NCBI GenBank assembly: GCA_904063045.1 | Contig: CAJFCJ010000028.1 | Location: 873,230 to 937,229 of the forward strand | Direction: 5' to 3' | DNA length: 64,000 nucleotides | From: Dimorphilus gyrociliatus | Lineage: Eukaryota; Animalia; Annelida | Shown: positions 13,167 to 64,000 of the stretch, one piece after another | Layout of the letters: each line of letters starts with the position of its first letter | Numbering within the stretch: position 1 is the stretch's first letter | Translations under genes and position numbers: made by a program | The notes under the pieces: generated by a model | What the model was told of the DNA's origin: nothing | Seen by the model: the letters and a program-made list of their open reading frames with translations, nothing else | Database searches by the model: none

Positions 13167-34518
<21,352 letters not shown>

Positions 34519-39788: not shown

Positions 39789-41902
39789 ATGGCTACGGCA
39801 GCGGTGACTGCAACCGGCCTTTTCCAGATTATAATATGCTTCTTTTTAATATCAAAAGCTTCAAACTATCGTTATCCTAAAAATGATGTTCAGTTAGGTA
39901 AGTAATTTTTAAAATATGTCCCAAATGTTAATGTTTTCTCAACATTTTCTTATATTTCAACAGGAGTTATTGTTGATGCTAACAAGGAATCTGCAAATAT
40001 TCTCAAAGCTATGCGTTTTGTTATGAACGCAAAAAAAGATCTGTCAATTGGTCATTCAGATATAAAATTCAATGCAAACACTCAAACCCCCATGATAAAC
40101 AACAGCTTCGATTTGATGGCCGCTAGTAAGTAGATGTTCTTACTTTTCCCTTTTTTCGAACGAAAAAATGGTTGAGTGGCACCATCTACCGTCTACTGTT
40201 TTATAGCATATCTAATTTAAGGAAACCGTAAAACTATAAAATCGTTGTCTTTTCCTCGTCCTACCTTTTATTCAATCTCCGTCCATCTCTCTTTCTTTTC
40301 CCCTTCCTTCCACTCAACTTCCTGTTTTATTTACTTTTCTTAAATTGATTATTTCTCTTAAAAAGAAACACTGAACATTAATTAAACACATATTTTATAT
40401 TTAATGTGGATATTCCTGTTTTTTATTCACAGTGTGCAAGCATATGTCTGAAAAAGTTTATACAATTTTTGGAATGAGTACACCATGTTCAATGGACACG
40501 CTACGCTCATTTTCTCGCCAATTTCAAATGCCATATGTTTCTATTGGTACTCCTTTAAAGTCAAATCATCCAAATTCAAATATGGAACCCCCTTTCGAAT
40601 TATTCATCCGACCCCGATACTCAGAAGCAATTGTTGAACTAATAAGACATTATGGTTGGAAAAACGTCTATTACATTCACGATACGAGAGTAGACGGAAT
40701 TTTGCGGGCTGAACAGTTGATTGAGAGTCTTTCCGAGGAAATGGTAACGGTTCATTTCGATATGATCTACGCTAGAGACGGAAGTGACGCTCACGATCAG
40801 ATATCGACAATAGATACAACTAAATCGGAAGACCAAAGAGTCATTATGCTTGATATGAGTAAAGATAACGCCAACGAACTATTCAATAATTTATATACAG
40901 ATGCGAAAAGATTAAAGTTTCACTTTCTAGTTGTTGAATTAGGAATAGTTGAGTTGAACTTTACGGAAAAAGCTGCTGGAGGTCTGAAAGTAACTGGTTT
41001 CCAAATGCTCGGTGCTCCATCTGTAGTTTCTCTTTACGGAGATGGAAAATTCACATCCTCTAATGATATTAATACAACAATTAACAAGTAAATATTTAAG
41101 ATTTATAAACAAACAAACAAACCAGCGGAAGAGTTTGTCACAAGTATTTTTATTTTCTTTTCAGATACCTAAGATTTATCGACGAAGAAGTTGCTGACTT
41201 TAAAAACTATCATCAGTACTTTACACACGACGTCGCTTTAACAATAGACGCCTTAATGGTAATGAAAAAAGCTTGGAAGGCTCTATTAAGTAGAAAAGCT
41301 GATATTGACGATTATAAAGATAGTCAAAATATTCAATGCGATAAGAGCAATAGAAAATGGAAAAAGGGTCCGGAAGTAATGAATGCATTAAAAAGGGTTA
41401 GAATAAAAAATGGCCTTACAGGAAATATTGCTTTTGACGACAATGGTTATAGGAAAGATTTCGTTCTTTTACTATTCGAAGTTGCCTTTAGTAAGGGCCT
41501 TACTCAATTTGGTTACTGGACACCTAAAGTAAAGACAAAAAATGGCAAGACAAGAGGTGGTTTAGGCATAAGGCAACCGGATGAAAAAGAGAGAAATTTA
41601 TATCAATCGGCAATTAAGGATACAAGAATTCGTTCAAATAAGAAGATAAGAAAAGTTACATCAATATTGGTAAGTGTTTCAATTATATTTATTCTTTGAA
41701 ATTTTTCTTATTAATTAATTAAATATAGGATTTCTAAATTATTACTTTTCTAATTATAACTATCTACACTTTATACTTTTTTCTATTTAAATACATTTTA
41801 TACGAAATTGTATCTACACAACAAAATTTCCTTTTAATAAAAAATCAGTACCAATAAACTATTAAACACAGTAAGGGCTGTATGTAATGTATATATACTG
41901 TT

Positions 41903-41939
<37 letters not shown>

Positions 41940-44900
41940 CAATGTATTATGTAGACTGTAAGATTCTTGACTATTTCAAATGAAATTTTTCAAATATTTT
42001 ATAGTCATGTAATAAACTTGGTGTTTTAATTCAAGTCTTATTCTATGAATACTATACTTTATACTGTGTTTATGGTTTATAAATATATATATACTTACAT
42101 ATATATATATATGTATATGTATTTACATATAATATTATTTTGCATCTTTTATAATACTATTCATTACTATATATTGTTTTAATTTTTTACCTTTTTTTAC
42201 TCTTTCTTTACACATTTTTTTAAAAGTAATTCTCTGTTTTCTTATACATTTGTTTAGAATTTTTTACTATCAATTTTCTATTACACAGCACTTTGCCTAT
42301 TTCATTTTACATTCATTCCATTCAAAACAAAAAATAGCTTTTTAAGTAAATTATACAATAAAAAAAATGATAATAAGATTACCAGTTTAACTCTTATCTC
42401 TCTCTCTTTTTTTGTTTATTCTATCAAGTTTACTTATTTTAGCAAATTTCTTTTTGTTTTATTTTGTTATATTTATTTGATTATCCAAAATATAATTAAA
42501 ATTTTCCTCTGTTTATTTTCTGGTTTTTTTATTTTTTTTAAAAAAACAAAAAGAAACCAAAATAAAATATTTAGGATTGAAAGAAATCAACATTTTCTTT
42601 TAGTTTATTCTTTGTTTATAATAGTTCTTTAATGATAAAAGAAAGAGAAAACAAAGATAAATATATTACATTATTTAAAAAGATATTGGTACTGATGTAT
42701 ATTGCACTCAGTTAATCTTTTAGTACTTGATGAAATATGTTTATTTTCACAAGATTAGGTAATATTTATTATTTAAATAAAATAAAAATATATACATATA
42801 TATATAGTATATATATATATATAAAGTATATACATATATATACATATATATATATATATATATTTATACAATTTATATCATACATTCTCTTCTAATCACA
42901 CTTTTTTCGCATGTTTGCGCTTTTGAGCATCTTGTGCATGTATTTCAAATTTTCTTGTACATTTATCAATTTCTCAAGAGCAACTCTTAAAAGCCTATAA
43001 ATATTTTATGAATACTTAAGCTAATAATCAAATCTTTTGCTATATAAAAAAGAAACATTTAAATAATTAAACAGAATTATCTTCTTCTTTTCTTTTCATT
43101 ATTATAAAAACTGCAAATTTTTTTTCAAATACTTCTTTTATTGAAAGTTAAAACTAAACAAGTTGCTCTAAAAAAATCCTTCTCTTCTTCTACGCACCAT
43201 CAATTTCTTCTTCGCAGTTTCTTCTTTTCTCAAACTCTCTCTCTCTCCCTCTCTCTTTGTCTTTCTCTATCACTTTTTCTCTAGCTCTCTTCTTTACATC
43301 TTTTCTCTTTTCTTTAAAAATATTTTTCTATTTAAAAATGAAATTTTAAACAGAAAAATTTTCTGTATCAAAAGCACAACTTGCGAGTGAAAGTGTGATT
43401 GGTGGCCAGAGTGCTTCAAGCCAAAAATATAAAGCAAACATCCACGCAAAATTACTATAACAAACTAAAGAAAAGTAATGTTTTTTGATTTATTCAGAAA
43501 TATTTCACTAACAGTAATAATAGTATTAAAAAAAGACATTTTATGTAACATTTTTCTATAAGATAATTAATTCAAAATTCGGTCACTTATTACTCAGACC
43601 GCTCCATACCTGATGGAAAATAAAAGTACAAACGCAACAGGAAATGATCGTTTTGAAGGTTATTGCAAAGATTTAGCAGATAAAGTGTCTGAAATTCTTA
43701 AATTTGAGTATGAAATTGTACCTGTTCCGGATGGTCAATACGGTAAACTACTAGACAATGGAACTTGGACAGGAATGATGGGGGAACTCGTTAGTAACGT
43801 ACGTAGCACATATTGTTAATTCAAAATAACCAAAAAAATAGAATATTAACAAAACTACACGATATGAAATATTTAAATAGCTTAAGTGAAATAAGAATCT
43901 AATTTTATTCTTGAATTATGTATAAATCATTAGAGATCATTCATTTCCTTCAACTTCTAGTTACTTGACCAAATTACTAACCAAATCTTCTCTTTCTAAA
44001 CATTCCATGAATTTGTTAATTTAAAGGATTTAAAACAAAAAACAAAACTATTAAAGAAACCCTTTTATAACGAGCACCATTGCCACGAATCTCTCGCTGG
44101 AAGCGCGCAAGTTGTGTTCAAGAATACAAAAAAAAAACAAAACGCTTAAACGACTAAATCCTATCATTTTATTTTCAATAAAAATAAAATGCAGACTGCT
44201 CCGTATCTTTTCCGACGAAATACTACTAGTGATGGTCAATCGTTAACGGGAAATAATATGTACGATGGATATTGCGCCGAGTTAGCAAGAATGATTGCAA
44301 ATATTGTTGGATTTGAATACGAAATTGTTCCAGTTCCAGATGGAAATTACGGTAGTCGAAACGAAGACGGTACTTGGAACGGAATGGTTGGAGAGTTAGT
44401 CAGAAATGTAGGCCTATAATTAAATAAAAGTATATTTTATGAGATAAGGAAGCAATCGACCACAAAGGAAAGAAAAAAAAATATCATTATATATAACTCA
44501 GTTTTGTATTTCTTTTTAAATCCACTAGAGAGAAAAAAAAACAGCAAATAAACAATCAAGTAAATAAGCATGCACGCAAACAAACAAACAAACAAACTAA
44601 CTAACCAACAAAAAAGACAAATAAACTCCTTAACTTATTTTCAATAACATGTTTAAACTAGGAACGAACGAGAAAGAAAGCCAACTAAAATAAGAATTTT
44701 AATACGAAAATGAATGCTCTATTAAATAAGTTGTTCATTTCTTCTTTTTTTTTTAAATTTCGTACAGAGAGCAGATTTGGCTATTGCACCTTTAACAATA
44801 ACTGCAGTTAGAGAAGAGGTCGTTGATTTTTCCAAGCCATTTCAGTCTCTTGGAATATCAATCATGATTAAGAAACCTTCAAACGAGAAACCTGGAGTGT

Positions 44901-46155
44901 TTTCTTTTATGTACCCTCTATCTTCGGAGATATGGATGTGTGTTATATTCGCTTATATTGGAGTATCTGTCGTTCTGTTCCTAGTCTCAAGATTTAGCCC
45001 TTTCGAATGGAAAGTGGAAGATTCTAATGAAGGACCAACAGTCACAAACAACTTTACAATATTTAATTCTCTATGGTTCTCTCTAGGGGCCTTTATGCAG
45101 CAAGGATGCGACATTGAACCTAGATCAATATCTGGTAGAATTGTTGGATCTGTTTGGTGGTTTTTCACCCTCATTATAATCTCTAGCTATACGGCTAATT
45201 TAGCTGCATTTCTCACGGTTCAGAGAATGAAAGCACCAATAGAGAGCGCAGATGATTTGGCTAAGCAAACTGAGATAAAATATGGTACAATCGATTCTGG
45301 AACCACTAAGGAATTTTTTAGGACGAGCACCATACCCACTTATGAGAGAATGTGGTCATTTATGTCCTCCCAAAAGCCTTCTGTTTTTGTTAAAGGCAAT
45401 GAGGAAGGTATCAGAAGAGTAAGAAACGAGAATGGCAGATACGCTTTCCTTATTGAATCGACTATTAACGATTATATCAACCAGAGGGAGCCTTGCGATA
45501 CAATGAAGGTAATCAAAAAGTCATGTGACTATTCACTATTGATTATTAAATTATTAAATTTGTTATAGGTTGGGGAAAGTTTAGATTCTAAGGGGTACGG
45601 AATAGCAACTCCTCTGGGATCCGACATGAGAGATCAAATAACGCTGGCTGTTTTACAATTAAGGGAAAATAATGAGCTTCCTGCTTTACAAAAGAGGTGG
45701 TGGTATGAAAAGGGCGACAATTGCGATAAGGAATCGTCTAAGACCAAGCAGGACACAACAAACGCTCTTAAATTACTCAACGTAGCCGGCATATTCTATA
45801 TATTGATAGGAGGACTAATCTTAGCTATTACTATGGCTGTTTTGGAATTCTTCTACAGAGCGAAGGTTGAATCGAAAAAACGAAAGGTTAATCATCACCT
45901 CTATTTAATTAATTGTTTTCATTAAAACAATTGTTTTAAACTTTCCTAAAAGATTTCGTTCAGTGATGCTATCCGACTGAAAGTTCGTATGTCAATGAAG
46001 GGTGGAAGTGAAATAGAAGCTCATACAGTTCAGGAAGTTCCGTCTTCTTCAACGGTATCGTATCATATAAATTTCCTTTAATTATTCAGTTTTCAAATAT
46101 TAATCATAACGTTTAATTCTATTTACAGAAGTACAGAACATATTCGTTTGAATGA
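39789..46155 (+). CDS. AMPA-type ionotropic glutamate receptor subunit, gene 2 (with duplicated exon 5)
   Basis: Exons: 39789-39897 (alternative ATG at 39750), 39964-40125, 40433-41087, 41165-41669, [43598-43798 or 44195-44407], 44768-45508, 45569-45886, 45953-46054, 46129-46155. All junctions are GT-AG and in phase. Motifs: [51 protein letters not shown]. Confidence 0.93.
43598..43798 (+). CDS. iGluR gene 2 exon 5a (alternative S1 N-terminal segment)
   Basis: tactcag|ACC...AAC|gtacgt; 201 nt, phase 0-0; [67 protein letters not shown]. Confidence 0.9.
44195..44407 (+). CDS. iGluR gene 2 exon 5b (alternative S1 N-terminal segment)
   Basis: aaatgcag|ACT...AAT|gtaggc; 213 nt, phase 0-0; [71 protein letters not shown]. 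Confidence 0.9.
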
Positions 46156-48159: not shown

Positions 48160-48517
48160 CTGATATACAACTGGAAAATTGATCACTATATACCAACATT
48201 CCGTCATTTTTTATTAGCCTAAATATACTTTATTTAATTTTATGTATGTATTTCTAGTGTTTAAAAAAACCGGTGTTATAGCTGATAATACAGAAATTCG
48301 GTGTATTTTATTAAAAGTAAATAGTCTTTAAAGCATTTATTATTGTTTATAATAATGTATTGATTATACTTTTATCAAGCATCTATATAGTAGAATACAG
48401 TGAAAGAAAAGAAATATCTAAAAAACATATAAGATAAAGAATGTTTCGTTTTAGTAAGATAATATAAACCGGTATAAGAGTATTCAAATTCTTTTTCGTT
48501 CAAGTGTATTAAAGCAG

Positions 48518-51500
48518 TTATCTATTGATTTCCTGATGAATCTCTTGAATGATTTTACCAAGATCTTTTACCTCTTTAGTAAGTTCGGTTTGGAATAGAA
48601 AATCTAATCTTCTATGATGTTCAAATTTTCTTATTAGATCTCTAATATTGTTTTTGAATTCGTTTTTACATTCAATTAAATTCAATTCCAATTGGGATAA
48701 TCGTTCTTCAAGATCATCCAACTTGTTCATAGATGTAACGTTAATTTCTTTATGAGTACAATTAAATGCAATCTTCAAGTTTTCTCTTTCCTTATCATTC
48801 GTATTATAATTGCCATTTTCAGCAAACTTCTTCTGAACTATTGATCTCAATCCAAAGAATAGACAATGATTCCACCAAGGATTTGTATTAATATTTTTAC
48901 AATCTATCGCCCAAGAAGTGTATAGATAGACAGTTGGAATTCCTATTCTATCGTACTTGAGCAATTTTCTATCTTTATCCTTAGTTTCTGCTTCTTTTAT
49001 CGAAGGTAATTCTAAATGTTTTTCACGTTGTCTCTCTACACGATTATGGTTATCGTTAGCACTAATCTGTCCATAGGAATCGGTCCTTTTCTTCTTTGCT
49101 TGATGAGCTCTAGTCCTTCTTCTACAACAGCTACTATTGCATCTTATTATAAGTATCACAGTCCTTATTATTCCTCGAAATACGAGTCTGATGAATGAAA
49201 GTATGCCAAATACTACTATTTTCAAATTAAAAGCATCTAAATCCAGTATTAATTCAATTCTTAATCGTTGAACCTCTAAGTGAGCTCGCTCCCTTAATTT
49301 ATTGACATCATCAACAGCTAAGCCAGTCAACAAATTCATAACAATGATAGGCATAAATACTAGAAAAATTGTAAAGACGATATAAGTCGATTCTGGGAAG
49401 TTGACAAGATATTCCTTCCCCGAATCTTGTTTGTAGGCAAAGAACATATCATTAAAATCGAATTCGCCAGTCATCATTACAAATGTTTTAACAATAGATA
49501 TTCCAAAAGATTCAAAGTAGTACTAAAAATAAGAAAAATCATAGAATATTCATTAATATATTTAATAATATAACCATATTTCTTCGAATTTTTACCTGAT
49601 TTTTTAGTAAAATATGAAAACTGAATCCAAAAGCAAAGATAAATAGGAGCAGTACTGAAAAAAATTGAGAAAAAGTCCTCAAAATAGTTGTAACCATAGA
49701 AACGTAAATGCCAATTAAAGGGAATCGTCTTAATTGAAGTATAAGATTAATCCATATAAATAGTAATGTAACTGATCCAACTTCCCATTGCCATGTTTTC
49801 ATCTAAGCAGAATTTAATCGTGACAATTAAAACTAATACAAATAGAGTGAAAAGTGTAAACTTACATAATTACCAGAGCAGGTAGTGTCATAATTAATTA
49901 TTATGAGTAAAGGACAAAGGTATGTAAACCAATCAAGACCATTCTTAATATGTAAATATCTCCATTTTAGTATAATTATTTGAAATATCTTTATAGGCAG
50001 AAAGGAATCTTATAGAAATGTTATATATTAAGAAAATTACGAGCATCTTTCTTACTTCTAGGAAAATTCCTCCCGCTATAAATATATGTAAGAGTATCAA
50101 AACAATTCGAGTTTCATAGGTTTTTTCACAAAATACATTATCTTTTAAAGGTAGACTCTCGTTCTTTCCATCACTTGCATTATTTCTATAAGATGATAAC
50201 AGAATTATACAGTACTATTGTATATACTGTATAAATTATATAGTGAAATTTTTGTGGAGATAAGCCTCATAACTTACTCTTGTGGTTGTGATGAAGATAC
50301 CAATAAAAACTTGGTAAATAATATAGCATAAACAACATAGCATAGTAAAAAAGCAAGAAAGTAATTTAAAGAATATTTCCAAATACATTCCAGATACTTT
50401 TCGGTTACTATATGTCTCATTAGATCTCCTCTTTCATTTTCGGCCTTTGTAGACGAGTATTATTTAAAAAAAACCAGATATACAGTATATTACAGGAATT
50501 TTTATCAACTTACCATTAAATGTAAAGGGTGAGTCAGTCGTTTTGTAGTTTTACCTTTCCTTTCTTGATCATAGAATGAATCAGCAACAAATTCAAAATT
50601 ATATATTTCGTGATGATGATTATTTTTGCATTTACAATCCCTGACGAATATTGGTTCAGTTTTGTAACTCAATTGATCATCAGCGGAATTAACAATGATA
50701 TTATCTCCGTCATTGAATTTATTATATAGAAATCTAATTTCTCTTGTTGGTTCAGAAAATTCAACCTTTCCAAAATCTGAATATTTATGAATCTCTCTTA
50801 ATTCGTTATCTTTCTCCGATGGTTTAATAACGCATTTATCCAAAGCTAAAAGTGCCATTTCTAGACGAAAACAGTTTGGTTATAAATAATTAAATTTCAT
50901 AGATTTTCATTGCTAAATAATAAACCTGGCATTTTTCTAATCAAATTCTTAAAAGGACTATCAATATATGTCTTTTTCATGAATTTAAAGTAAACTGCTT
51001 CCCTGTTATAGCAATGCCTCAGTAAGTTTGACCATTTATTAGATTCTAATAGCAGCAGTACATCAGCTCTTTAAATCATTGGAAAAGAAGTTATTTAAAA
51101 TAAATAGACAAAGTAATTTTAAAAGCTAAACATACCTCATTCCCATATCTATTGCGTAATCTAAAACGTTTCTTTTATCATCTCTACTTATCATACCATC
51201 AATATGTATATCGTAGTTCAAAAGAGTTTCAAGGACTTTTCTATGTCCTCTCGTTATGGCCTCGTAAGCAGCTTTTGTGCCCCATCCTTGCTGGAAAACC
51301 CAATATTCTTTGATGATCAAATTACTTTTAAAATCAACTTAAATAAAAAAATTATTACACTTTTGATTTCCTTAAATAATTCTCTCTCGCTGTCACCTAT
51401 TTGGAAAAATCATTTGATCACTTACAGAGAAATTTATGAGAATATAGTACAGTATATAAAACCTACATAATCTTTCTTCGTCACTCCTATCCTTCTTTTG

Positions 51501-54020
51501 ATGAAAATTTTTCTCCTCAGATTTGATTGAGAATATTATTTCAAGTAGATAATCCAATATATCATGATTACCTTCCAAAATAGCCCGATCGATGGGCAAA
51601 ACTCTTTTACTATCGGGAATTAGAAGTAACGAACATATCTTGCTGGCGTCCAATTTGCAAAATAGTTCTTTACATGCACTGCAAAAAATAAACTATATTG
51701 TAATAGTTTTATATTTTAGATAACTTACTTAACGTTGTTATTGCATACAGCAATATATAAAGGTGTTTCACCCTTATTATTCCTCACCAAATACCTGGCA
51801 TTGCAGTTCAACAACAACTAAAGTGAGAAAATTTTACAGAGTATTTTATATATGTATTTTCTTATATTAAATATTTACCTTTGTATATAAATGATTATGA
51901 TTTCTGGCCGCAATATGAATAGGTTTCTCTTCCTTACTATCACTATAATTTAAAATATCGTCAAAATTTTCAATAGTATCATAATATTCTTTGGAGAGCA
52001 ATATCTAATCGGAAAAGTCGAGTTTCATTAGATTTCTTTTTATGGGTTTACTTGTTATTGCAATAAATATTATGTTGATCGTATGGTAAGCTAACCTGGG
52101 CTATGTCGATTAAATTATCATCAATGGCTCTAAAAACTACAAAAGGTTCTGGGAACTTTCTAAATTTCTTTAAATAGAATGGTAAAATCTTCTTAAGGAT
52201 AGTTGGTTCGTCGTTAATTACGCAGTAATTAACGGGACTTTTATAACCTTTTGGTAAATATTCTAACAATGGTATTTTATTTTCTCGAATGTAGACTAGC
52301 GTATCTTTTTTGAGTGCATCATTCATTAGCGTAAGAAAAATATCTGATCTAAGAAAAGAAAAAAAAGTCCAATAGAGCATTGATTATATTCAATTATCGC
52401 TTACTCATTTTCAGCAAGAAATTCAATCAAAATCGAATTTTTGTTACAAATTGCCAAGTGAATAATATTTTGATCGTTTTCATCATAAACCTTTACTTTT
52501 TCAAATATTTCTGTGTATTTTTTAAAAGGGGTAATGTAAAGCTAATAAAAGAATAAGATCACGAATGATAAGTTTCCTTACTAAATGAATATTTTTCTTT
52601 ATAAGCTCTAAAAAACGTTTTAATTGCAGCAAGATTTTTTACTTCCACTAAAGACAGTAGTAAAGGATATTTATCCCTGGGAATAAATTGATTTTCTATA
52701 ATGAATAAATGAATAGATATGTTATAGACAAACATAAAGTCTCGTTTAGTATTCAGGCTTACCTTCTTTAAGTAAAAACTTTAAAAGATCTTTATCAAAC
52801 AAATTATAATGAATTATTCTCTTTCCTTCTTGATTTTGTATCTTATACAACTGGAAACAAGATAAAATAGATAAAAGATATTACAAGGTATTATACAGTT
52901 GAAGAAAAACCTGAATACTCTCTTTCTCTGATAGCATCTTCATTAAATACTTCATTTTATGGATTTCTCTTTTGCTAATACTCTCATTTTTATAATGAAA
53001 AGGTGTTGAATGAGTTTCATCCGTTATCACTTTTAATATATACTCTGTATCATTATCTTTAATCTGTTCAAACAGATATTTTGAAACTTGTATTTGTAAG
53101 TTGCTTAATGCTTGAGATAAGTATGTTCTTCCTGAAGAATTTCGGCTCTATAATGAAAGTCAAAATATTCCAAAGTAAGGAACATTATTTCGTAGATTAT
53201 TGATGAAGAGCACTTACTAGCCAACTAAAATTATCATAATGTTCAGATTTCTTAATAAATGAAACTAAATTTTTAATTACACGCCAATGACATCTGCTAT
53301 CAATAGCCGCAAAGAGTATTCTTTCCTTAGACTTTCCAGTCCCATCTATTTTGAACATGTGATCTAGAAAGAATTCTAGAAACTCCATTGAATCGTCTTT
53401 ATTGTGGTTTTCATCTGAAATATTTTAATATAGTATTTAAAAGTTTTATTTAAAACATAACCTTCTCCTACCTTCCGTTGTTATTGTACTAGTCAAATCA
53501 GGATAGCCTTCAAGATCAATCTATTCAGTTGAACACGTTATAAATCTATACACAAGAAACAAACAAAAGTAAAACAAACATTATTTTGCCCTAAACTTCT
53601 AAAATAATAGGAAACTGGTAAGTTATTTTGAGAATCCCTTTCATAGATACCTGAAAATCGTAAGTAAGGTAACGTAGAGTAACGTTGATTTATAAATGAA
53701 ATATTATACGAACGAGCTCCATATGAAAATAGAATTTTTAATAATGAAAGACTATTTTTTGTTGCGGCATAATGCAGTAAACAACGTCCGTAATCGTCTC
53801 GTTTTGTAAGCAAATTATCTAAATCCCATGAATTAATATTTTCCAATTCTTTAATAAGAGAACCTTCTTGATCTTTATCATCTTTAGACCATAGATGAAC
53901 CAACTGGTTATTTTTTAAAAAAAAAATCATGCATTCCACACTAAAATTTAATTAGTTAATTTATCGAACCTCAAAAACTCTATGCTCTATATCTGTAAAT
54001 TCGACAAGAGAAGAGTTCAT
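48518..54020 (-). CDS. TRPA-like ankyrin-repeat cation channel, copy A (~22 exons, roughly 1,350-1,400 aa)
   Basis: First exon 54020-53970 ([17 protein letters not shown]), last exon 49522-48518. Ankyrin motifs ([24 protein letters not shown]), [47 protein letters not shown], pore MMTGEFDF, S6/TRP-like [18 protein letters not shown]-terminal coiled coil. All junctions I traced are GT-AG and in phase. Confidence 0.9.
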
Positions 54021-54482
54021 CCTTTGATAAAGATAGTGTTTTGACTTAATGTAGCAAAATGCTTAAGTCAATGCTTTTACCTGTTGACATTTAAAGTACG
54101 AAAAGAATTTTGCGTATATATTGACTACCTAGTAAATATACATGACAAATTCTTTTGTGATTGGCTTACAAGGTCAATTTTACGATAGCAATTTAAATAA
54201 CAACACTTTCCATTTCCCAGTAAAACCACGGAGATAATAGATATTCAAGCGTTATAGCTATTCAATATAAAGTTAGGTATGACTAACTTCTGATTTCGAT
54301 ATTGTTTCAAAGAAGTTGGTCTTAAAGGGTAGACCTTTTATTTTTCTGTGTAATTAGTCATTGGTGGCAGAATCATAATTAATTAAATATTTAAATATGA
54401 TCAAATCGATTTAAATGAAAATTTAATTATTTATTAATAATAATAAAGCGCTCTATGCAATTTACAAACACTATATTTGACA

Positions 54483-57400
54483 TTATTTTGGCAATTTTTG
54501 TTGATCAATTTTTACCTCAAGATCTTTCAAATTTTGTCCCAGATTCTGTACTTCTCTAAGTAGATTCTCTTGAAAGCCGCTTTGATATTTAACTAAGTTA
54601 GATTCTAGTAGGGAAAATCGTTCTCTAAGATTATTAAACTCTTGCTTTGTTACAATTTCATTTTGTCTTTGATTCTCTAAGAAAGTTTTCTCCAGGGTTT
54701 CTCTATTCTTATCATTCAGAATATTTTCATCATCTTCATTAATTTTCTTTTGAACTATCGATCTTAGTCCAAAAAGGAGAAAATGATTCCACCAAGGATC
54801 CGAATTTCTATGTTTACATTCCAGTGCCCAAGATGTGTAGAGATAGACTGTGGGAATACTTATCCTGTCGTAGACTTTTCTATTGGAATTGAATTTCATT
54901 ACTACTGATTGATCAATTGAAAATAATGCGTTGCATCTTTCCACAGCTTCTCTGGGAACCATTTGAAAATTCGCTTTTTGATTGTCCCGGTTATTAGTAG
55001 TGTTTCGCCTTTGCGCGCATAGGGTACAGTAGCACACACATCTACGTCCTGTAATGTGTTTGAAAAATGTAAGTACTTTATAAAACAATCTTTTTTTATC
55101 ATAAACGTTCAAGTCCAGAGTTAATTCGATTCTCAGTCGTTGAACTTCTAAATGGGCTTTCTCTCTTAGCTTATTAACGTCATCCACAGCCAGAGCGGTT
55201 AATAAGTTCATAATGATGATAGGCATAAATATTAAAAATATAACGAAAATAATATAAGATGATGTTGGAAAATTAACGAGATGTTCACTTCCCGCATCAT
55301 CTTTATGAGCATAGAATAGACTTGTAAATTCAATTTCTCCAATCATCATAACTGTAATCTTAACAAGAGACTCTCCTATACTTGAAAAATAGTACTAAAA
55401 TACGAAAAATACAAACAAATAGTTGTATAATTAACATAAAAGGAATAACAAACCTGATTTTTAAATAATGCATGAAAACTTAAAGCAAAAGCCGTAATGA
55501 AAAGTAAAAATACAAGAAAGAATTGAGTGAATGTTTTCAAAATAGTTGTAACCATCGAAACGTAAATACCAATTAAAGGAAAACGTCTAAATTCGAGTAT
55601 TAAGCTTATCCATAATAAAAATAGAATGATCGTACCAAATTCCCATTGCCATACTTCTATCTATAAAATATAAGTAATAGTAGTTAGCATATAGTAATTA
55701 GTTTTATTCACCTCAATTTCAGAGCAAGTTTCATGAACATTAATTATAACCATTAAAGGTGAAATATACGTAAACCAATCCAAGAAATTCTTAAAATTTA
55801 TGTATCTCCATTTAAGAATTATAATTTGGCAAATCTAACATTAAATTAATCAAATAATTAATGCCTTAGATTAATTAATTAATAGTTAACCTCTAGAAAT
55901 ACTCCAATACATATTAGAATAATAAAGGCAAACCATAAGTAATTAAATGGCTTGTTGGTTGGACAATCTCTTTCGAAATTTTCACTAAACGTAAAATTCA
56001 TTAATCGTTCTCTTGAAAATTTTGTTGATAACATGAATAGTATTTCAGTAAATAATCCAACGTAAACGCAATAGTATAATAGAAAGAACAGAAAATAAGA
56101 AAATGAATATTTCCATATATAATTAAGGTATTTTTCGGTAACTTTATGTCTCATTAGATCTCCTCTTTCATTTTCAACCTATTATTTACATTATGTATGT
56201 CTTAATAACATGTATATAAATATTATTTCTATTCAATAAATACCATTAATTGTAGAGGATGCTCTAATCGTCTTGTAACATTGCCAACTAATTCTTTATC
56301 GTAGAATGAATCGGCTACAAATTCAAAATTATACATTTCGTGATGACGATCACTTGTACAATCGCAGTTATCGATATATTCTGGTTTGCTGTGGAATTGA
56401 TTCTCCTCTTTCCCATTTAAATTAACGACAAAATTTCCTCCTTCATCTAATTTACTATGAACAAATTTAATCTCCCTTATTGGTTCAGAAAGTTCATTGC
56501 TTTCCTCAAAGCTCTTGTATTTAAGTTCCTCTTGAATTTTATTATCTTGTCCCGACGGTTCAATAATGCATTTGTCTAAAGTTAGCAATGCCAATTCTGC
56601 ATATGGAGAAAAGTTCAAAAGTGTTTCTCTCTATTGAAACCCTATTCTTTATAATTTATATTAACCTGGCATCTTTCTGATTAACTTTTTAAAAGGGCTG
56701 TCAATATAATATTTCTTAAGACATTTTAATACGGTTTTCTTCTCTTTATAGCAATGTCGTAACAGATTTGACCATTTATTAGATTCCAACAGTATTTTAA
56801 CCTCTTCTCTACGAAAATTGATGAAACATTATTACATAGTCAAAGAGAATATCGGAAATATGAACAATTAATGTTCAATAACTATTATCTTACTTCATTC
56901 CACTATCGATTGCGAAATCTAAAATATTTCTTTTATCAGTCTCACTCAGGACACCGTACGGGTAAATATCATATTTTAATAAGATTTCAAGCACTTCCCT
57001 ATGACCTTTTGTTATGGCTGTGAAAGTTGCATTTGTACTCCATCCTTGCTGTTACGTTAATACAAAATATAACATTCATCGTGTTTGGCAATACTATTAA
57101 TAAGAAATATAAGTAATTACACTTTGTATTATATTTAATAGATTCTCTTTTGCTTTGCCTATAAGAAAAGAAACGGTAAAGATATTTATACATAGTGTAT
57201 ATTCGAACAATTAAGGAGACAATGGACTTACTTAAATTCTCTTCAGAGAGATTTACACAAGTACTTTCTTCAAAGCAAATTAAGAATATCTTATTCATAA
57301 AATAAGCCAGTACTGTACTATATCCATTCGAAATAGCTACATCAATGGGAAGAATATTTCTGTTGTCAGTTTTCAACATTAATGAAGAGAATTCTATTGT

Positions 57401-59832
57401 GTTCAAACTATTTAATAATTCCTTGCAGACCCTAATAGAAAAAACATAAATTGTTCTTAGCTAGTATAAAAAATCTTTGTGATAAAATGATAATATCTTA
57501 CATAATATTATTATTTTTCACAGCTAGAAATAGAGGAGTTTCACCATCGTTATTTTGAAGTGAAATATTTACACGTTTAGATAGTAATAACTGGAAAAAA
57601 TGATATAAAGAAACTTGTCAAAAATGTCTTTATCTTATAAGAAAGATGTAAAAAATTTCAATTATAAAATATTGAAAATACTTTTGTAAAGAAATGATTC
57701 TCGTTTTTAGCTGCTAAGTGAATAGGCCTATCCCCATTATCATCTCTAAAATTCATCAATTCATCAAAATTTTCAACATTCTTATAATTCTCCTCCGATA
57801 GTAAAACCTTAAGATAGATAGATACTTTATTTACAAGTAAACGTATTAAGACACATTTCTTACCTTTAATAAATCAAGTAAATTATCTTTAATAGCTTGA
57901 AATACTATAGAAGATTCGGCAAATTTTCGAAATTTATCCAAGTAAGAAGGTAAAAGTCTTTCTAAAATTTTCGATTCTTTTTGAATAACGCAATAATAAA
58001 TTAGACTACAATAATTATTCGGTAAAGTTGTCTTTGATCTATTCCAGTTGTATCTTTGATATAGAATTTCATCTCTTTCGCATATATCATCTAATAATTT
58101 TTCAACAATACTTCGCCTGCAAAAACATTGAGCAATTAATTAATTGAATGATGGTTGTAAATTTTTAACTATTACGCCTACTCATTATATAAAAGATAAT
58201 CTATTAGTGTCAGATTTTTATGCTCAATTGCTTTATATATAATATTTTGCTTATTATCATCGCATTCAATGACTTTTCCGACATGTCCTGTTGAAAAATA
58301 GAAGACTAAGTTTTCTTATAAACTTTATACTGTATAATAAAAAAACATGAATTTCTTTTACCATTGTTGGGAAATGTTTGTTTTAAGATTTCAAACAATT
58401 TCTTTATTGCTTGAATACTCTGAACTTCGGCAAATTGTATAACTAAAGGATAATCATCTTCAGCTTGAAATTGATTGTCTAAAAGTTGAAATATTACATT
58501 TTGTTTGATTAGTTATTAACAATTGAATTACCTTCTTGCATTAAAAAGTCCAATGAATCTTTATCAAAGATATTATAATGAATTATTCTCTTTCCAGCAT
58601 TATTCTTTATTGTGAATAACTGTCAAAAGTATGAGAATCGAATCAATTTCAAGTTATCTTCTTTAAAATTGTATATTTAAAAACAATAGAATATACTTGA
58701 ATATCTTTATTTTCTGAGAGAATTTTTATTGATTCCTTCAATTTTTCAATACCGTGTTTACTGAGATTTTCAAATTTATAATGAAATGGTGTTGAATTAA
58801 ATTCATCAGTAATCATATCCATAATATATTCAGTTGATTTTTTCTTTACAAGACTGAATAGATATTTTGCAACTGATAATTGAAGAGTATTTAGAGACAG
58901 GAATAATGCTGTTTTTCCAGAATCTTTTCGGCTCTATTTAATAGAATATACACATTCAAGTTATTATATATAGTATATTAACAAAGAAAGAAGTTATACT
59001 AACCAGCCAGTTGAAAAATCCCTCTTCAGTTTTTGAACTTTGAATTAGAATGACTATACTCTTAACGATTTCTTCATTACATCTGTTTTGAACCGCAGTT
59101 AACAATATTGTATCTTTATTAATATCCTTCCAATCTTTCTTGAATAAATCAGCCAAATGATATTCAAGGTATTCAAACTTTTCATTTGAATCTTTAAAAT
59201 CTATTTTTAAATAATAATGATATAAGAAACTTGTTAGCAAAAATCGATATAAACATATTTAAGTCTATAAATTCTTCTCTATTTTACCTGTCTCTATTGT
59301 CGTTTTCGGATCAGTTTTATCTTCATTCTATAAATGAAATTTGATAGGCTGATCTACAAATGTATAAACAATAAAAAAGATATATCGTTACTTACATTAT
59401 TTCGCTTTAACTTGTGAAATACGTATGTTAAAGGAAAATTATTGTATGAATCTCTCTCTCGGAAGCCTATTAAATAGATTAATACTTATAAATATTATTG
59501 TTTTCAGACGATATAAAAAAACTTACTTGCTCCATGTGTTTTAAGAATTTTACATAATTTCCAACATCGTTTACTAGCAGCGTAATGAACTAGACAATAA
59601 CCCAAGTTATCTTGTATTTTAAATAACACTCTTTTTTCTATATCTGATAAACTGTTCAAGTGATTTTCGAGATCGATTAAGGTTTCTTCGCTTTCATTAT
59701 TCCAATTTTCAGTTAACTATATACGTAATAGTTATTTATTTATATCCATTTATATTTCTAATCTAAAAATATTACACAAACCTTGAAGACTTCTTTCTGT
59801 TTCTCTGTTAAATCGTCGTTAAAAACCTCCAT
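54483..59832 (-). CDS. TRPA-like channel, copy B (~21 exons)
   Basis: First exon 59832-59782 ([17 protein letters not shown]), last exon 55394-54483. Exon-by-exon homology to copy A; pore MMIGEIEF; [17 protein letters not shown]. Confidence 0.9.
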
Positions 59833-60217
59833 TTAACATTAGTAAATCAATTATAGTAAAATATAATTAGTTTATTTATCATTAAGTAAATAGGAAAACG
59901 TGTGAAGGTGGGACGACGTTGAAAACATAAAACAGCAGGAATTTTTTATGATTTTGTTCGTCTTCAACGAGAAAAGGTCTATTCACTAGACTGTAGGATA
60001 TTTGAATAACAACGTACTTCCTTTGTTAAACAAATGTCTCAAGCAATATTGCTGAAGAGTATGAAAAAATAGTACAAAATTTCATATCTAAAAATAGATA
60101 TTTAATTTGTGCAAAAATGCTTTATTTAGAATTAAAAACAATAGTTTACAAGGTAAAAAAAAACCATAAAAAACAAAACAAAACAAGATAAACTTGAATT
60201 CATTATGATTTACACCT

Positions 60218-63200
60218 TTAACCTATCTTTTTACCCAACTCTCTTATATCTCTTTTGAGTTCAGTTTGAAATAAAAAATCCGATTTTCTACTGGATTCAA
60301 CCCTATCATATAAAGCTTGAATACTATCTCTATTTTCCTTTTGATTTTGATTTATAATTAATTCTAATTGAGCTAATCTATCTTTAATACTTTCAAATTC
60401 ATTTTTAGTTACAATTTCAGTTTTTCTATAATCTGAAGAGATTTTTTCAAAAGTTTCCAAACTCTTTTTGTCTGTACAATTATCATTTCCTTCTCCTTGG
60501 TCTCTTTGAACAATTGATTTTAATCCGTAAAGAAACAAACGACTTCGCCGTGACTCTGATTTGAAATCATAACATTCGACCGCCCAACATGTAAAAAGAT
60601 AAACTGCAGGAATGCCTACTTTCCCATATCTTTCAGTATCCGGATTTAATGTCATTGTTGTAGCTTGATTAATAAAGGGTAATTTCTCTTCTTGCTGTTC
60701 GATTGAGCTATAGGAACCCCTACTCTTGGAATCAGAACTGCCAAATCTTCTTCGTCGGCTAGGAATACAAGAACAAAGTGCCACAAAAGAAATAGCTTGC
60801 CATAAACGGTAAATTTTGTCTCTAACAAATGATAGAATGTTTACTAGTAGACGCCTTTTATCATAAATATTCAGATCTAATGATAATTCGATTCTTAAGC
60901 GTTGAACTTCTAGATGAGCCTTTTCCCTGAGTTTGTTAACATCATCTACCGCCAGAGCAGTTAGTAAATTCATGACAATAATCGGCATTACAATCAAAAA
61001 TATTACAAAAATAACATTTGTTGCACGCGGAAAATTAACAAGATGCTCCTTTCCTAAGTCATATTTATATGCAAAAAACATATCTGTGTAATCGAATTCA
61101 CCAAACATCATTACAGTTGTCTTTATAAAAGATTTTGGAAGTGATGCAAAAAAGTACTGTAAAATTAAAAAAAGAGATAGTAAACATTGGCATACTGATT
61201 AAACAAGTTCAACTAATATTTACCTGATTTTTGAGCAAACAATAAAAACTAAATCCAAAAGCCATGATAAAAAGGAAAAATACAAGAAAGAATTGAGAAA
61301 ATGTCTTTAAAATCGTTGTAACCATAGATACATATATACCAAATACAGGGAATCGTCTTAATTCAAGAATAAGATTTATCCAAATGCTTAAAAGAGAAAC
61401 TGATCCAAGTTCCCATTGCCAAGTTGTCATCTTAACAAAAAGAGTTTATTGTGATATTAACGCTGTTTTTATTTTCGGTATATTAATAAACTTTACTCTG
61501 TTTTCATAGCATTGACGATCAAAATTGAATAGAATGATCAAAGGACTTAAATAAGTAAACCAATCAAGATAATTTTTTATCTCTGTAAAATATCTCCATT
61601 TGAGAATAGCTATCTGCTTTAACTTCAAAGCGAAAAAGATGAGAAAAAGAAACATTTTAAATTACTTATAATATACTGTATAAGTACATACTTCTAAGAA
61701 AATTCCAAGCAATATCAATAGATATAGAAAAATCATAATTACAAGAAATGATTTGCTTGAATCGCATACCTTTAATTGTCCAATAAACGTATCATTCTCC
61801 TTGTCATCTTTAGATCTTTTTTTTAAAAAAAAAACTAGCCATTTATTCAATATTCAATAAATTAAACTTTAATTTACTCTAATAGTGGTGTACTTGAATC
61901 TATTAATAATGTCGTAAAAAGCGAAACATATAGAGCGTAAAAGGCTAAATAGAAGAGAAAGTAAATGAAAGAATATTGCCAAGTATAATCCAAATATTTC
62001 TCAGTAACTTTATGTCTCATAAGACTTCCCCTTTCATTTTCAACCTATATATATATTTAATATAATATATTTTTATTAATATATGCAGTATATAGTATAT
62101 ACTAATATTTTAAAACATACCATTAATTGTAGAGGATGCTCTAATCGTCTTGTTGTATTTCCCATTAATCCTTTATCGTAGAATGAATCTGCTACAAATT
62201 CGAAATTGTACATTTCGTGATGACGATCATTTTCGCACTTGCAAGGTTTGTTATATTCTGGTTCGCTGTTATATTTATATCGATAACCAACTAAATGAAC
62301 TGAAATATTCTTCTCTTTCATTGATCTTTGATAAACAAATTTGATTTTCTTGGTTGGTTCTGTAAATCCGTCCCTCTCGTCAAAGTCTTTATATAAAAGT
62401 GTTTCTGTTAGTTTGCTATCTTTGGGAGTAGGCTTAATGATACATTTATCCAAAGCAATTAGTGCCATATCTAAATAAAAAGAAGACGTTAAGCTTTTAT
62501 TACTTTATTTTAAATGAAATAAATATTTACCTGGCATTTTTTTAATTAACTTCTTAAATGGACTATCAACGTATTTCTTACTAAAGCAACAATGATATAT
62601 CTTTTCCTTTTGATAACAATGTCTTAGTAGATTTGACCATTTATCAGACTCTAACAATATTCTCACTTGTTCCCTATGAGAGAGAGAGAGAGAGAGAGAA
62701 AGAGAGGTAAATTGTAAGTCTCAATTTGAAGAAGTAAACAGTCAAAATAAAGAATTTATTACGTCATTCCATAATCTATTGCATAATCGAGCACATTTCT
62801 TTTATCACTTTCGCTAAGTACACCGTAAGGATGAATATCATACTTTAGTAGAGTTTGCAATATTTGTAAGTTTCCCCTAGTAATTGCTTCGTACACAGCT
62901 TTTGTACCCCATCCTTGCTGTTGGAAAAATCTATATTGGTCATAAACCTATGGAAATGCTATTCTTACACTTTCAACTTTATTGAACAGAGTCCTCATTT
63001 CCACGTCTAAGAAGGATCAACAAAAAAGAAAACGTTCATTATACTTTATGCTTATCGTAAAATGTTTCATTGAGTAAGTGAAAACGACTTACGTAGATTA
63101 TTCTCCCAAGTAATACCGACATTTGGTGAAAACTTCATTTGAGTTGATTTTAGAGAGAATATCATTTCAAGAAGATAATCTAGTACATCATTATTTCCTT

Positions 63201-63951
63201 TTATAATTGCTAAATCCATTGGTAAAATATTCTTTTTATTCGATTTTAATAGAAGTGAGCATTTTTCTCTTGTCTTTTCTTTAAGATTCTCAAATAATTC
63301 TTTACAAACGCTTGAAAAGGGTTTTAGAAGACGGATTAATGAATTTACTCTCTTCTTTTACAAATTTAACTCACTCAACATTATTATACTTTACGGCTAA
63401 AAATAATGGACTTTCCCCTTTTCGGTTTTCTGTCATAAAACTTGCGTTGTATTGTAGTAAAAGCTAAATATAAAGTAAGATAATGTGAATTAAACAATTT
63501 GTTAATTTAGATATCTTACTCTTATAAATAGACGATTGTTCTCTTTAGCTGCCAGATGAATTGGAGTATTTTGATCATTGTCTCCATAGTTGATAACTTC
63601 TTCAAAATTTTCAATACTTTCAAATGTTTCTTTTGATACTAAAAGCTGATGTTTGAGGTTTTTTTAGTTTTAATTTCTTCAACAACGGAGACAATTGAAA
63701 AAGAACCTTTAATATTTCTATTGAATGATTCGATACAGCTTTAGAAATCATCCTTGACTCTGGGAACTTTTTAAAATCATTTAGATAAATTGGTAATATC
63801 TTCTCTAATATTTTATGCTGCTTATATACAACACAATAATAGATTGGACTTTTATATCCATATAAATCTGATATATTTGTTTTTATATAGTTTTCTTTCT
63901 TATAGATATAATCATCTTTTCGAAAGATTTCTCTCATTAATTTATCAAAGG
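60218..63951 (-). CDS. TRPA-like channel, copy C (5' part outside window)
   Basis: Last exon 61156-60218; pore MMFGEFDY. Upstream exons are homologous to A and B through an exon starting near 63951 ([12 protein letters not shown]); the gene continues past 64000. Confidence 0.88.
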
Positions 63952-64000
63952 CCTCTTTCCTAATTTAAAAATAAAATAAACTATTTATTGAAAAAGCTTT

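Follow-up and report, generated by a model that had tools for sequence, protein, structure and literature searches.

How might one of two tandem homologous exons be chosen in an annelid AMPA-type glutamate receptor gene? The window (the whole 64-kb stretch of DNA analysed here) comes from Dimorphilus gyrociliatus, a tiny marine worm with a genome of 74 Mb, and the gene concerned, DgyrCDS13979, contains an annotated exon, 5a, and an unannotated homologue, 5b. The answer favoured here, with a probability of roughly 0.6 and on the basis of modelled RNA pairing and sequence conservation, is that the sense pre-mRNA carries three functional elements, the islands E0, E1 and E2 in the introns around 5a, which form two mutually exclusive long-range duplexes that would act as a competing-structure switch between 5a and 5b.

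Tandem homologous exons

Exon 4, which is constitutive, was placed at 41163-41669 by a tblastn search of the window with the annotated protein (P0122); like every feature described below, it lies on the forward strand. Its donor is TTG/GTAAGT at 41670, and intron 4 extends over 1928 nt (41670-43597). Exon 5a (43598-43798; 201 nt, 67 aa) is matched exactly in P0122 and is the version of the public protein model. It is followed by exon 5b (44195-44407; 213 nt, 71 aa). The two are tandem homologues of like size that show 53.5% amino acid identity, are in the same phase and have canonical AG/GT sites; both match positions 11-76 of Pfam family PF10613. In front of the 5b acceptor AG (44193-94) lies the A-rich tract described in the first-pass annotation, and the 5b donor is AAT/GTAGGC. 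Constitutive exon 6 (44768-45540, the end being approximate), whose acceptor comes after a U10 tract, starts the region that comprises the end of S1, M1-M3 and S2. The gene's introns here measure 1928 and 969 nt; the median intron of the D. gyrociliatus genome is 66 bp (PMC7854359).

The annotated DgyrCDS13979 protein is of the 5a form only, without 5b, and no 5b-containing protein was found in the protein collections searched. The upstream paralogous receptor gene has a single S1 exon (27329-27538), and no elements resembling E0, E1 or E2 were found in that gene.

Relatives were sought by word searches with exon 6, 5a and 5b, and only one related species matched, to which the sequences L001, L002 and L004 all belong; the comparisons below are between two species in all. 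A protein scan for relatives returned only distant animals, a word search of sequencing runs returned only a marine metatranscriptome (9% of words) and one run (65%), and an exact-pattern scan of metagenome contigs gave no match to the E1 core. One animal in a metagenome has three tandem copies of the same exon and a candidate downstream docking site. In L001, exon 5b is intact, with conserved splice sites and a dN/dS of 0.13, and the corresponding value for exon 5a is 0.23. Judged from the sequence comparison, both exons are maintained as coding sequence.

A long-range duplex enclosing exon 5a

The first-pass annotation described two complementary islands, E1 upstream of 5a and E2 between 5a and 5b. 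The sequences given for them (43374-43415 and 44073-44117) agree with the window, and all four helices listed (43374-85 with 44106-17, 43397-400 with 44088-91, 43402-06 with 44082-86 and 43411-15 with 44073-77) were reproduced by RNAduplex, which added two short helices specific to the window. E1 is taken here as 43370-43415, a putative shared docking element whose full length pairs with either E0 or E2. E2, the candidate selector, is taken as 44072-44118 on the basis of its RNAduplex pairing with E1 and its conservation in L001. The duplex is imperfect, with about 34 bp, and has an energy of -46.7 kcal/mol, compared with -24.5 +/- 3.7 kcal/mol for dinucleotide shuffles of both arms, none of which was as low (0 of 2000). 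With one or more flanking nucleotides, the energy lies between -47.2 and -48.0 kcal/mol. When 43340-44150 is folded, the MFE and centroid structures both close on E1:E2, and in the context 42600-44800 the pair probabilities are 0.87-1.0.

A duplex scan of the window compared 3097 anchors of 42 nt each with the stretch 300-1100 nt downstream; 42512-42562 was left out of local window scans. E1, entered as a separate extra anchor in its exact register, reached -47.2, lower than all 3097 grid anchors (best -43.9), a rank somewhat favoured by the exact register, the nearest grid anchor (43381) reaching only -35.3. The inspected anchors ranking above 43381 were low-complexity sequences of the (CT)n/(GA)n type, and the sole remaining anchor of complex sequence was E0, pairing with E1. 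Inspected low-complexity tracts aside, the strongest long-range duplexes of the 64-kb scan involve E1. The 11-mer core occurs at only two places in the window, E1 and E2.

The stated distance of 77 nt from the end of E2 to the 5b acceptor AG is also correct. A duplex that encloses 5a and ends 77 nt 5' of a weak 5b acceptor is, by analogy, the known docking/selector loop-out geometry. That part of the original docking/selector reading stands, since the duplex is real, exceptional and conserved; the single duplex it envisaged has given way to an arrangement of three elements.

A competing partner of E1

The third element takes the place of the earlier statement that no convincing competing selector for 5a could be found. 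Alignment with L001 identified a conserved block in intron 4 (the E0 island, 42868-42990), which is near-identical from about 42870 to 42960 and has indels further 3'. Its core (42882-42925), about 450 nt upstream of E1 in the same intron, is conserved and offers E1 a second complement for the same bases, pairing with 43370-43414 through 38 bp, five of them G-U. In the shuffle test, 42882-42919 against E1 gave -39.2 kcal/mol, compared with -18.1 +/- 3.3 kcal/mol (0 of 2000 shuffles as low). E0 and E2 show no comparable pairing (-15.5 kcal/mol). Because E0 and E2 use the same E1 bases, E0:E1 and E1:E2 exclude each other, so that E1 is one intronic element with at least two mutually excluding partners (E0 at -42.0 kcal/mol in the window and E2 at -47 to -48 kcal/mol). 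E2 adjoins 5b at the distance given above; from E0 to 5a the distance is about 670 nt, and E1 falls within that stretch.

Two GCAUG motifs of the Rbfox-binding type occur within 42909-42940, one (GCAUG, at 42909) within the E0:E1 duplex and the other (UGCAUG, at 42935) ten nucleotides past its end. They are the only GCATG sequences common to these introns and L001; the background frequency of GCATG in the window is 0.31 per kb.

The 3' half of E1 has a candidate further partner at 42286-42321 (-27.9 kcal/mol), a place that lies beyond the related contig, and a weak possible third partner in the 5a acceptor region (43576-43596), the duplex energy of which is marginal (-18.5 kcal/mol in the window, with 17 of 2000 shuffles as low, and -14.6 kcal/mol in L001, with 119 of 2000). 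E2 forms long gapped duplexes with exon 5b (-38 kcal/mol) and 5a (-30 kcal/mol), weakening to -26 kcal/mol in L001. The idea that E1 is a decayed exon copy was rejected, since it aligns to 5a and 5b with a score equal to the shuffle mean. Also rejected were pairing between a 3' extension of E0 and the block just 5' of E1, for which no duplex went below -11 kcal/mol, pairing of the same extension with the 5a donor (-16.6 kcal/mol, the complementary bases not being kept in L001) and a hairpin at 43350-43366 (not kept in L001). An Rfam search of 42600-44800 returned nothing relevant.

Conservation of the elements

Synonymous sites differ between the window and L001 by 42-58%, fourfold sites differ at 66 of 151, and bulk intron sequence is unalignable, at about 35-52% identity. 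In this one related species the elements, by contrast, are about 95% identical. The E0 core is identical in 43 of 46 columns and E1 in about 43 of 46, the differences in E1 being, by eye, a substitution at 43389, one other and a 1-nt indel in an inter-helix loop. The arms of E2 (44073-44091 and 44106-44123) are identical in 19 of 20 and 17 of 18 columns; the unpaired middle between them (44092-44105) is replaced in L001, with 4 of 29 columns identical and a 15-column indel. Under the divergence of the fourfold sites, the binomial chance of such conservation of the elements is 1e-7 to 1e-10.

Both duplexes are retained in L001, with energies of -34.7 kcal/mol for E0:E1 and -44.3 kcal/mol for E1:E2, and the few changes within the elements shorten or lengthen helices at their ends. 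Of conservation and covariation, named in the first-pass annotation as checks on E1 and E2, the first has been borne out: the paired arms are about 95% identical, but between the two species the paired bases are invariant, with no compensatory double substitution. Sense-strand duplex energies are better than antisense energies in both species, as would be expected if G-U pairs matter.

Pairing does not account for all of the conservation. An AU-rich block directly 5' of E1 (43318-43369) is identical to L001 in 46 of 52 columns, and no convincing pairing partner was found for it; it may be a protein-binding site. This block and 42926-42990 are conserved and unexplained by pairing, which counts against a reading of the locus as a switch.

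A proposed switch in exon choice

In the proposed switch, E0 and E1, which are transcribed first, would pair with each other. With E0:E1 formed, E1 would be occupied and 5a would lie outside the loop, where the strong exon 4 donor could join it; the 5a donor would then skip the weak, A-rich 5b acceptor and join exon 6, giving the annotated 5a form. If E1:E2 formed instead, 5a would be held within a 656-nt loop and left out, and the exon 4 donor would be brought beside the 5b acceptor, giving the 5b form. Since both exons are multiples of 3 nt, double inclusion cannot be removed by nonsense-mediated decay, and exclusive pairing would provide fidelity against transcripts containing 5a and 5b together. 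The balance between 5a and 5b may be set by transcription speed, by helicases or by proteins at E0, with its two conserved GCAUG motifs.

Folding of successively longer prefixes is consistent with this order of events. E0:E1 has a probability of 0.79-0.88 as long as the prefix does not extend beyond E2; once such sequence is included, E1:E2 rises to 0.97. The trend is the same in L001, although equilibria predicted for RNAs of 1-2 kb are not reliable and reverse with the choice of context. Counted against the switch is that E0, unlike a classical selector, adjoins no exon.

Alternative explanations

It may be that the duplexes are real and selected but have another job, either the back-splicing of 5a into a 201-nt circular RNA or the shortening of long introns for a spliceosome tuned to 66-nt introns. 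This is unlikely, yet the evidence for duplex structure fits it equally well. For circularisation, the classic geometry is a pair of reverse-complementary elements, one in each intron beside the exon, and E1 and E2 are placed in this way around 5a. For intron shortening, splicing in D. gyrociliatus is reportedly most efficient on short introns (PMC7854359). However, neither job needs a selected homologous exon with a weak acceptor 77 nt after E2, and two exclusive partners for E1 point to a switch and not to a fixed scaffold. Skipping and circularisation of 5a could both be outputs of one loop.

A second and rather improbable explanation is that E0:E1 mainly forms an RNA bridge, which would bring the GCAUG motifs of E0 close to the 5a acceptor (within about 200 nt), and that E1:E2 is secondary. 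RBFOX-site bridges are documented (Lovci 2013, cited in PMC8052449), and the locus resembles them as described there: a distal conserved GCAUG lies beside a long-range stem, the other arm of which is near an exon, E1 being 183 nt before 5a. The motifs at 42909 and 42935 are moreover the only ones shared with L001. Their finding was post hoc, however, and concerns two 5-mers; factor binding is predicted from motifs; and, unlike the stem of the described bridges, E0:E1 has a stronger competitor, E1:E2, which is equally conserved. This explanation overlaps with the switch, in that a factor bound at E0 could free E1.

A role for the islands in regulation at the DNA level, for instance as intronic enhancers whose complementarity is incidental, has little likelihood. 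ATAC-seq peaks are frequent in long D. gyrociliatus introns (PMC7854359), and a DNA-level role would suit the blocks at 42926-42990 and 43318-43369, which are conserved and lack a pairing partner. However, there are two independent complementarities to E1, each about 6 sd beyond shuffles, the conservation of E2 tracks pairing and not position, and it is the sense strand that gains from G-U pairs.

A chance inverted repeat or decayed transposon remnant without function is very improbable. AT-rich introns commonly contain inverted repeats (115 pairs in 1.9 kb), but the shuffle and window-wide controls speak against this origin, as does identity of about 95% across a divergence that saturates neutral sites; no other copies of the elements, dispersed as transposon terminal inverted repeats would be, were found in the 64-kb window. 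Editing by ADAR is hardly credible either: exon-intron duplexes direct editing in vertebrate glutamate receptor pre-mRNAs, and the imperfect E1:E2 duplex, with its 34 or so base pairs in a pre-mRNA of this kind, recalls them, but all arms here are intronic, so that the duplex includes no edited exonic adenosine and no codon could be recoded.

Comparison with known systems

The closest parallels to the proposed switch are found in systems of competing RNA structures. In human and other vertebrate ATE1, with exons 7a and 7b, R1 and R4 compete for R3, as validated by mutagenesis (PMC7797038). The D. gyrociliatus locus shares with it two homologous exons (mutually exclusive in ATE1) and one central intronic element complementary to two similar ones; in both, the elements are conserved, one pairing encloses the first exon and the other forms a hairpin confined to one intron. 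Dependence on co-transcriptional folding was shown for ATE1 and is predicted for E0, E1 and E2. The layouts differ, however: ATE1 has its shared element between the two exons and R1 and R4 immediately in front of exons, whereas in D. gyrociliatus the shared element, E1, precedes the first exon and E0 is separated by 670 nt from the nearest exon. Nothing corresponding to the 30-kb R2:R5 module was seen, another gene in another phylum is involved, and, in contrast to ATE1 with its mutagenesis, the D. gyrociliatus switch is predicted from sequence.

In the arthropod docking-site/selector systems, such as Dscam1 exon 6 and 14-3-3zeta (reviewed in PMC6071210 and PMC4691838), there is likewise one docking element with alternative complementary selectors, and pairing loops out the preceding variant. 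E2 has the position of a selector, a short distance 5' of a variant exon whose splice signals are weak. Unlike those systems, this locus has two variants only, and E0 would select no exon but merely compete; no counterpart of an hrp36-type repressor is in evidence here. Drosophila srp, in which two docking-selector pairs conflict through a pseudoknot (PMC4691838), is also a two-exon cluster with conserved intronic elements, and the balance of its two pairings sets the exon ratio. At the present locus, by contrast, a single shared element makes the conflict direct, and no conserved element was found downstream of 5b.

The duplication model of Ivanov and Pervouchine (elements a, a' and a'') follows an include-or-loop-out logic (PMC6071210). 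The resemblance is that pairing within the upstream intron would include the first exon and pairing across the exon would loop it out, and inclusion is lower for exons that conserved complementary regions loop out (PMC8052449). In the model, however, the most upstream element is shared and the selectors are direct repeats beside each exon. Here E1 and E2 are mutually inverted and the middle element, E1, is the shared one; a simple tandem duplication of an arm plus exon therefore does not give this layout.

Implications for receptor diversity and exon duplication

In the literature searched, no earlier report was found of a docking/selector-type switch outside arthropods and vertebrates, nor of one in an ionotropic glutamate receptor. 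The kind of switch is already known, but not from an AMPA-type receptor gene or from annelids. To our knowledge, the insect genes in which RNA pairing has been demonstrated to control mutually exclusive exons amount to a handful, and among vertebrates there is one such gene. From a clear and compact annelid case it would seem that this mechanism evolves easily wherever exon duplication occurs. In a genome of 74 Mb whose median intron is 66 nt, a set of three short elements spanning 1.3 kb would moreover be compact enough for a tractable minigene system.

A more elaborate and quite tentative model treats the locus as a three-element, co-transcriptionally timed device, a docking/selector-type switch outside arthropods and vertebrates and in an ionotropic glutamate receptor. 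E0:E1 would form first and E2 would invade later, a neuronal splicing factor bound to the GCAUG motifs of E0 might free E1, and the upper lobe of the ligand-binding domain would change from 5a to 5b. Given the three-copy exon array of the metagenome animal, exon arrays with RNA-pairing control may be old and widespread in spiralians.

A 5b isoform, if made, would be one that is missing from public annotation. If the switch proposed here is true, exon choice diversifies the ligand-binding domain of an AMPA-type receptor in its S1 upper lobe, and not at the site where the vertebrate flip/flop exons lie.

Twin exons in an AMPA-type receptor gene

DgyrCDS13979 (952 aa) is an AMPA-type ionotropic glutamate receptor, with a transmembrane part 74% identical to that of vertebrate GRIA proteins. 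Its gene lies on the + strand of the window, which matches Dimorphilus gyrociliatus assembly GCA_904063045.1, contig CAJFCJ010000028.1, exactly. Exon 4 closes at 41669 on a consensus donor, and exon 6 opens at 44768, after a strong acceptor with a U10 tract in front of it. Between them are two exons, 5a (43598-43798) and 5b (44195-44407), which share 53.5% protein identity and correspond to one and the same part of the S1 ligand-binding segment (Pfam PF10613 positions 11-76). The public protein model includes 5a and skips 5b, which is absent from the public annotation and has a poor, A-rich acceptor tract. Both lengths are multiples of three, so double inclusion or double skipping stays in frame. 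The introns at this locus measure 1928 and 969 nt; the genome's median intron is 66 bp, and its short introns are reportedly spliced most efficiently (PMC7854359).

Both exons, with their splice sites, are conserved in the one related species sampled, represented by three Logan contigs (L001, L002 and L004) from three runs that are mutually identical or 99.9% identical; sequence searches found no further relatives. Synonymous sites differ by 42-58% between the two species (66/151 at 4-fold degenerate sites), and bulk intron sequence, at 35-52% identity, is effectively unalignable. With dN/dS values of 0.23 for 5a and 0.13 for 5b, exon 5b is intact and evidently a maintained coding exon despite its missing annotation. 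The first 25 nt past the 5b donor (44408-44432) are also mostly kept (about 24 nt with two differences, aligned by eye), which exceeds the needs of a donor site.

Directly upstream, at a distance of 15 kb, lies a paralogue that also encodes an AMPA-type receptor (25500-33500, + strand). It has only one S1 exon (27329-27538), and its channel region contains more introns than that of the gene studied here, in which exon 6 is fused. On the minus strand at 48500-64000 are three tandem ankyrin-repeat TRP-like channel genes, whose open reading frames recur about every 5.7 kb. In the public annotation they appear to be merged as a single product of 3636 residues with three Ion_trans matches, probably a fused gene model.

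A conserved duplex around exon 5a

The first-pass annotation had proposed that two GC-rich intronic islands, E1 (43374-43415) upstream of 5a and E2 (44073-44117) between 5a and 5b, form a duplex that sequesters 5a and activates the weak 5b. Both islands lie where it placed them and pair as claimed, and RNAduplex recovers all four of the helices it listed. The duplex reaches -46.7 kcal/mol, as against -24.5 +/- 3.7 for dinucleotide shuffles of both arms (0/2000 reach the observed value). When 43340-44150 is folded, it closes the MFE structure and the centroid structure alike, and its pair probabilities are 0.87-1.0 in a 2.2-kb context. In a window-wide scan of 3097 anchors of 42 nt, each compared with the sequence 300-1100 nt downstream, E1 was added as one extra anchor at its exact register and, at -47.2, fell below all grid anchors (the best of which gave -43.9); its closest neighbour on the grid, 43381, gave only -35.3, so the comparison is somewhat in E1's favour. 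The inspected anchors that scored higher than 43381 are polypyrimidine/polypurine low-complexity tracts, and the sole remaining complex-sequence anchor above it also involves E1. No dispersed repeat copies of the elements occur within the window.

Apart from two substitutions and a 1-nt internal-loop indel, E1 is identical in the relative. Conservation of E2 is limited to its E1-pairing arms (19/20 and 17/18 columns identical), whereas its unpaired middle retains 4/29 columns and carries a 15-column indel. At the 4-fold-site divergence, the binomial probability of such conservation is 1e-7 to 1e-10. The relative's duplex is also stable, at -42.6 to -44.3 kcal/mol. The comparison of these two species shows conservation, one of the checks suggested beforehand, and, with the paired bases invariant, yields no covariation.

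A competing element in intron 4

The first-pass annotation had found no convincing competing selector for 5a, but a second conserved island in intron 4 (42868-42990, + strand) supplies a competitor for the same E1 bases. Its core, E0 (42882-42925), can form a 38-bp duplex of -42.0 kcal/mol with 43370-43414 (-34.7 in the relative); in a shuffle test of 42882-42919 against E1, the observed -39.2 was reached by 0/2000 shuffles (-18.1 +/- 3.3). E0 pairs best with the E1 centre, which is mostly unpaired in E1:E2, and E2 pairs best with both E1 ends, so that conservation of every part of E1 is explained. The likeness between E0 and E2 is limited to their common complementarity to E1, and they have no comparable pairing with each other (-15.5). 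In both species the sense-strand form of each duplex is more stable than its antisense counterpart, as expected if pre-mRNA G-U pairs count. Two further, weak candidate partners of E1 are 43576-43596, around the 5a acceptor (shuffle p ~0.01 for the window sequence, 0.06 for the relative's), and, judged from the window alone, 42286-42321.

E0 contains two conserved GCAUG motifs, one within the duplex. Post hoc, these motifs hint at a factor that might bind there and tilt the balance, or at a second role of E0:E1 as an RNA bridge. Two conserved AU-rich intronic blocks (42926-42990 and 43318-43369) lie next to E0 and E1, inside the stem that these two form; they have a common motif, AAAUUUUCU(U)GUA, do not pair with each other, and may be protein-binding sites.

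When growing transcript prefixes are folded, the mean pair probability of E0:E1 stays at 0.79-0.88 for prefixes that end no further than just beyond E2, and E1:E2 (0.97) displaces it once the prefix takes in exon 5b and more. The relative drifts in the same way, with E0:E1 at 0.84, then a mixture, then 0.09 as against 0.83 for E1:E2. Because fold prediction is fragile for RNAs of 1-2 kb, no more is drawn from these results than a small energy difference between the two states and the ability of the upstream one to form first.

A possible splice switch and its precedents

The logic would be that of competing-structure control of mutually exclusive exons. Pairing of E1 with E2 would enclose 5a in a 656-nt loop and bring the donor of exon 4 close to the acceptor of 5b; in human data, looped-out exons are less included, more so with stabler stems (PMC8052449). 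Pairing of E0 with E1 would instead occupy E1 and leave 5a available, and the 5a donor would then favour the strong exon 6 acceptor over that of 5b.

The nearest precedent is ATE1, with R1 and R4 as rivals for pairing with a central R3 (PMC7797038), and the Ivanov-Pervouchine model gives the same include-or-loop-out outcome (PMC6071210). Unlike in either, the shared element here is upstream of the first exon, and E0 adjoins no exon. Additionally, E1 and E2 are mutually inverted, so plain duplication of an arm plus exon fails to explain their origin. In the literature searched, the validated docking/selector systems come from arthropods (Dscam1, 14-3-3zeta, srp and others) or vertebrates (ATE1), and for invertebrate AMPA receptors neither tandem S1 exons nor control by RNA pairing was found reported.

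An animal metagenome contig (JAAUYG010051591.1, 1-2700) carries at least three tandem S1 exon copies, at 2-193 (cut by the contig end), 1118-1327 and 2063-2272, followed by the next receptor exons. The copies have one common frame; both full-length copies have canonical splice sites, and the cut one has a GT donor. The intron that follows the last copy contains a segment (~2348-2395) that ranks as best duplex partner for both 255-294 after copy 1 (-36.6) and 1850-1889 after copy 2 (-37.5), each only ~3 sd from its own scan mean and in one species; the segment looks like a candidate downstream docking site.

As conserved RNA structure, the elements around exon 5a are well supported. As a splice switch they are plausible but unproven, and it is at that strength that the locus would add to the already known class of docking/selector and competing-structure systems.
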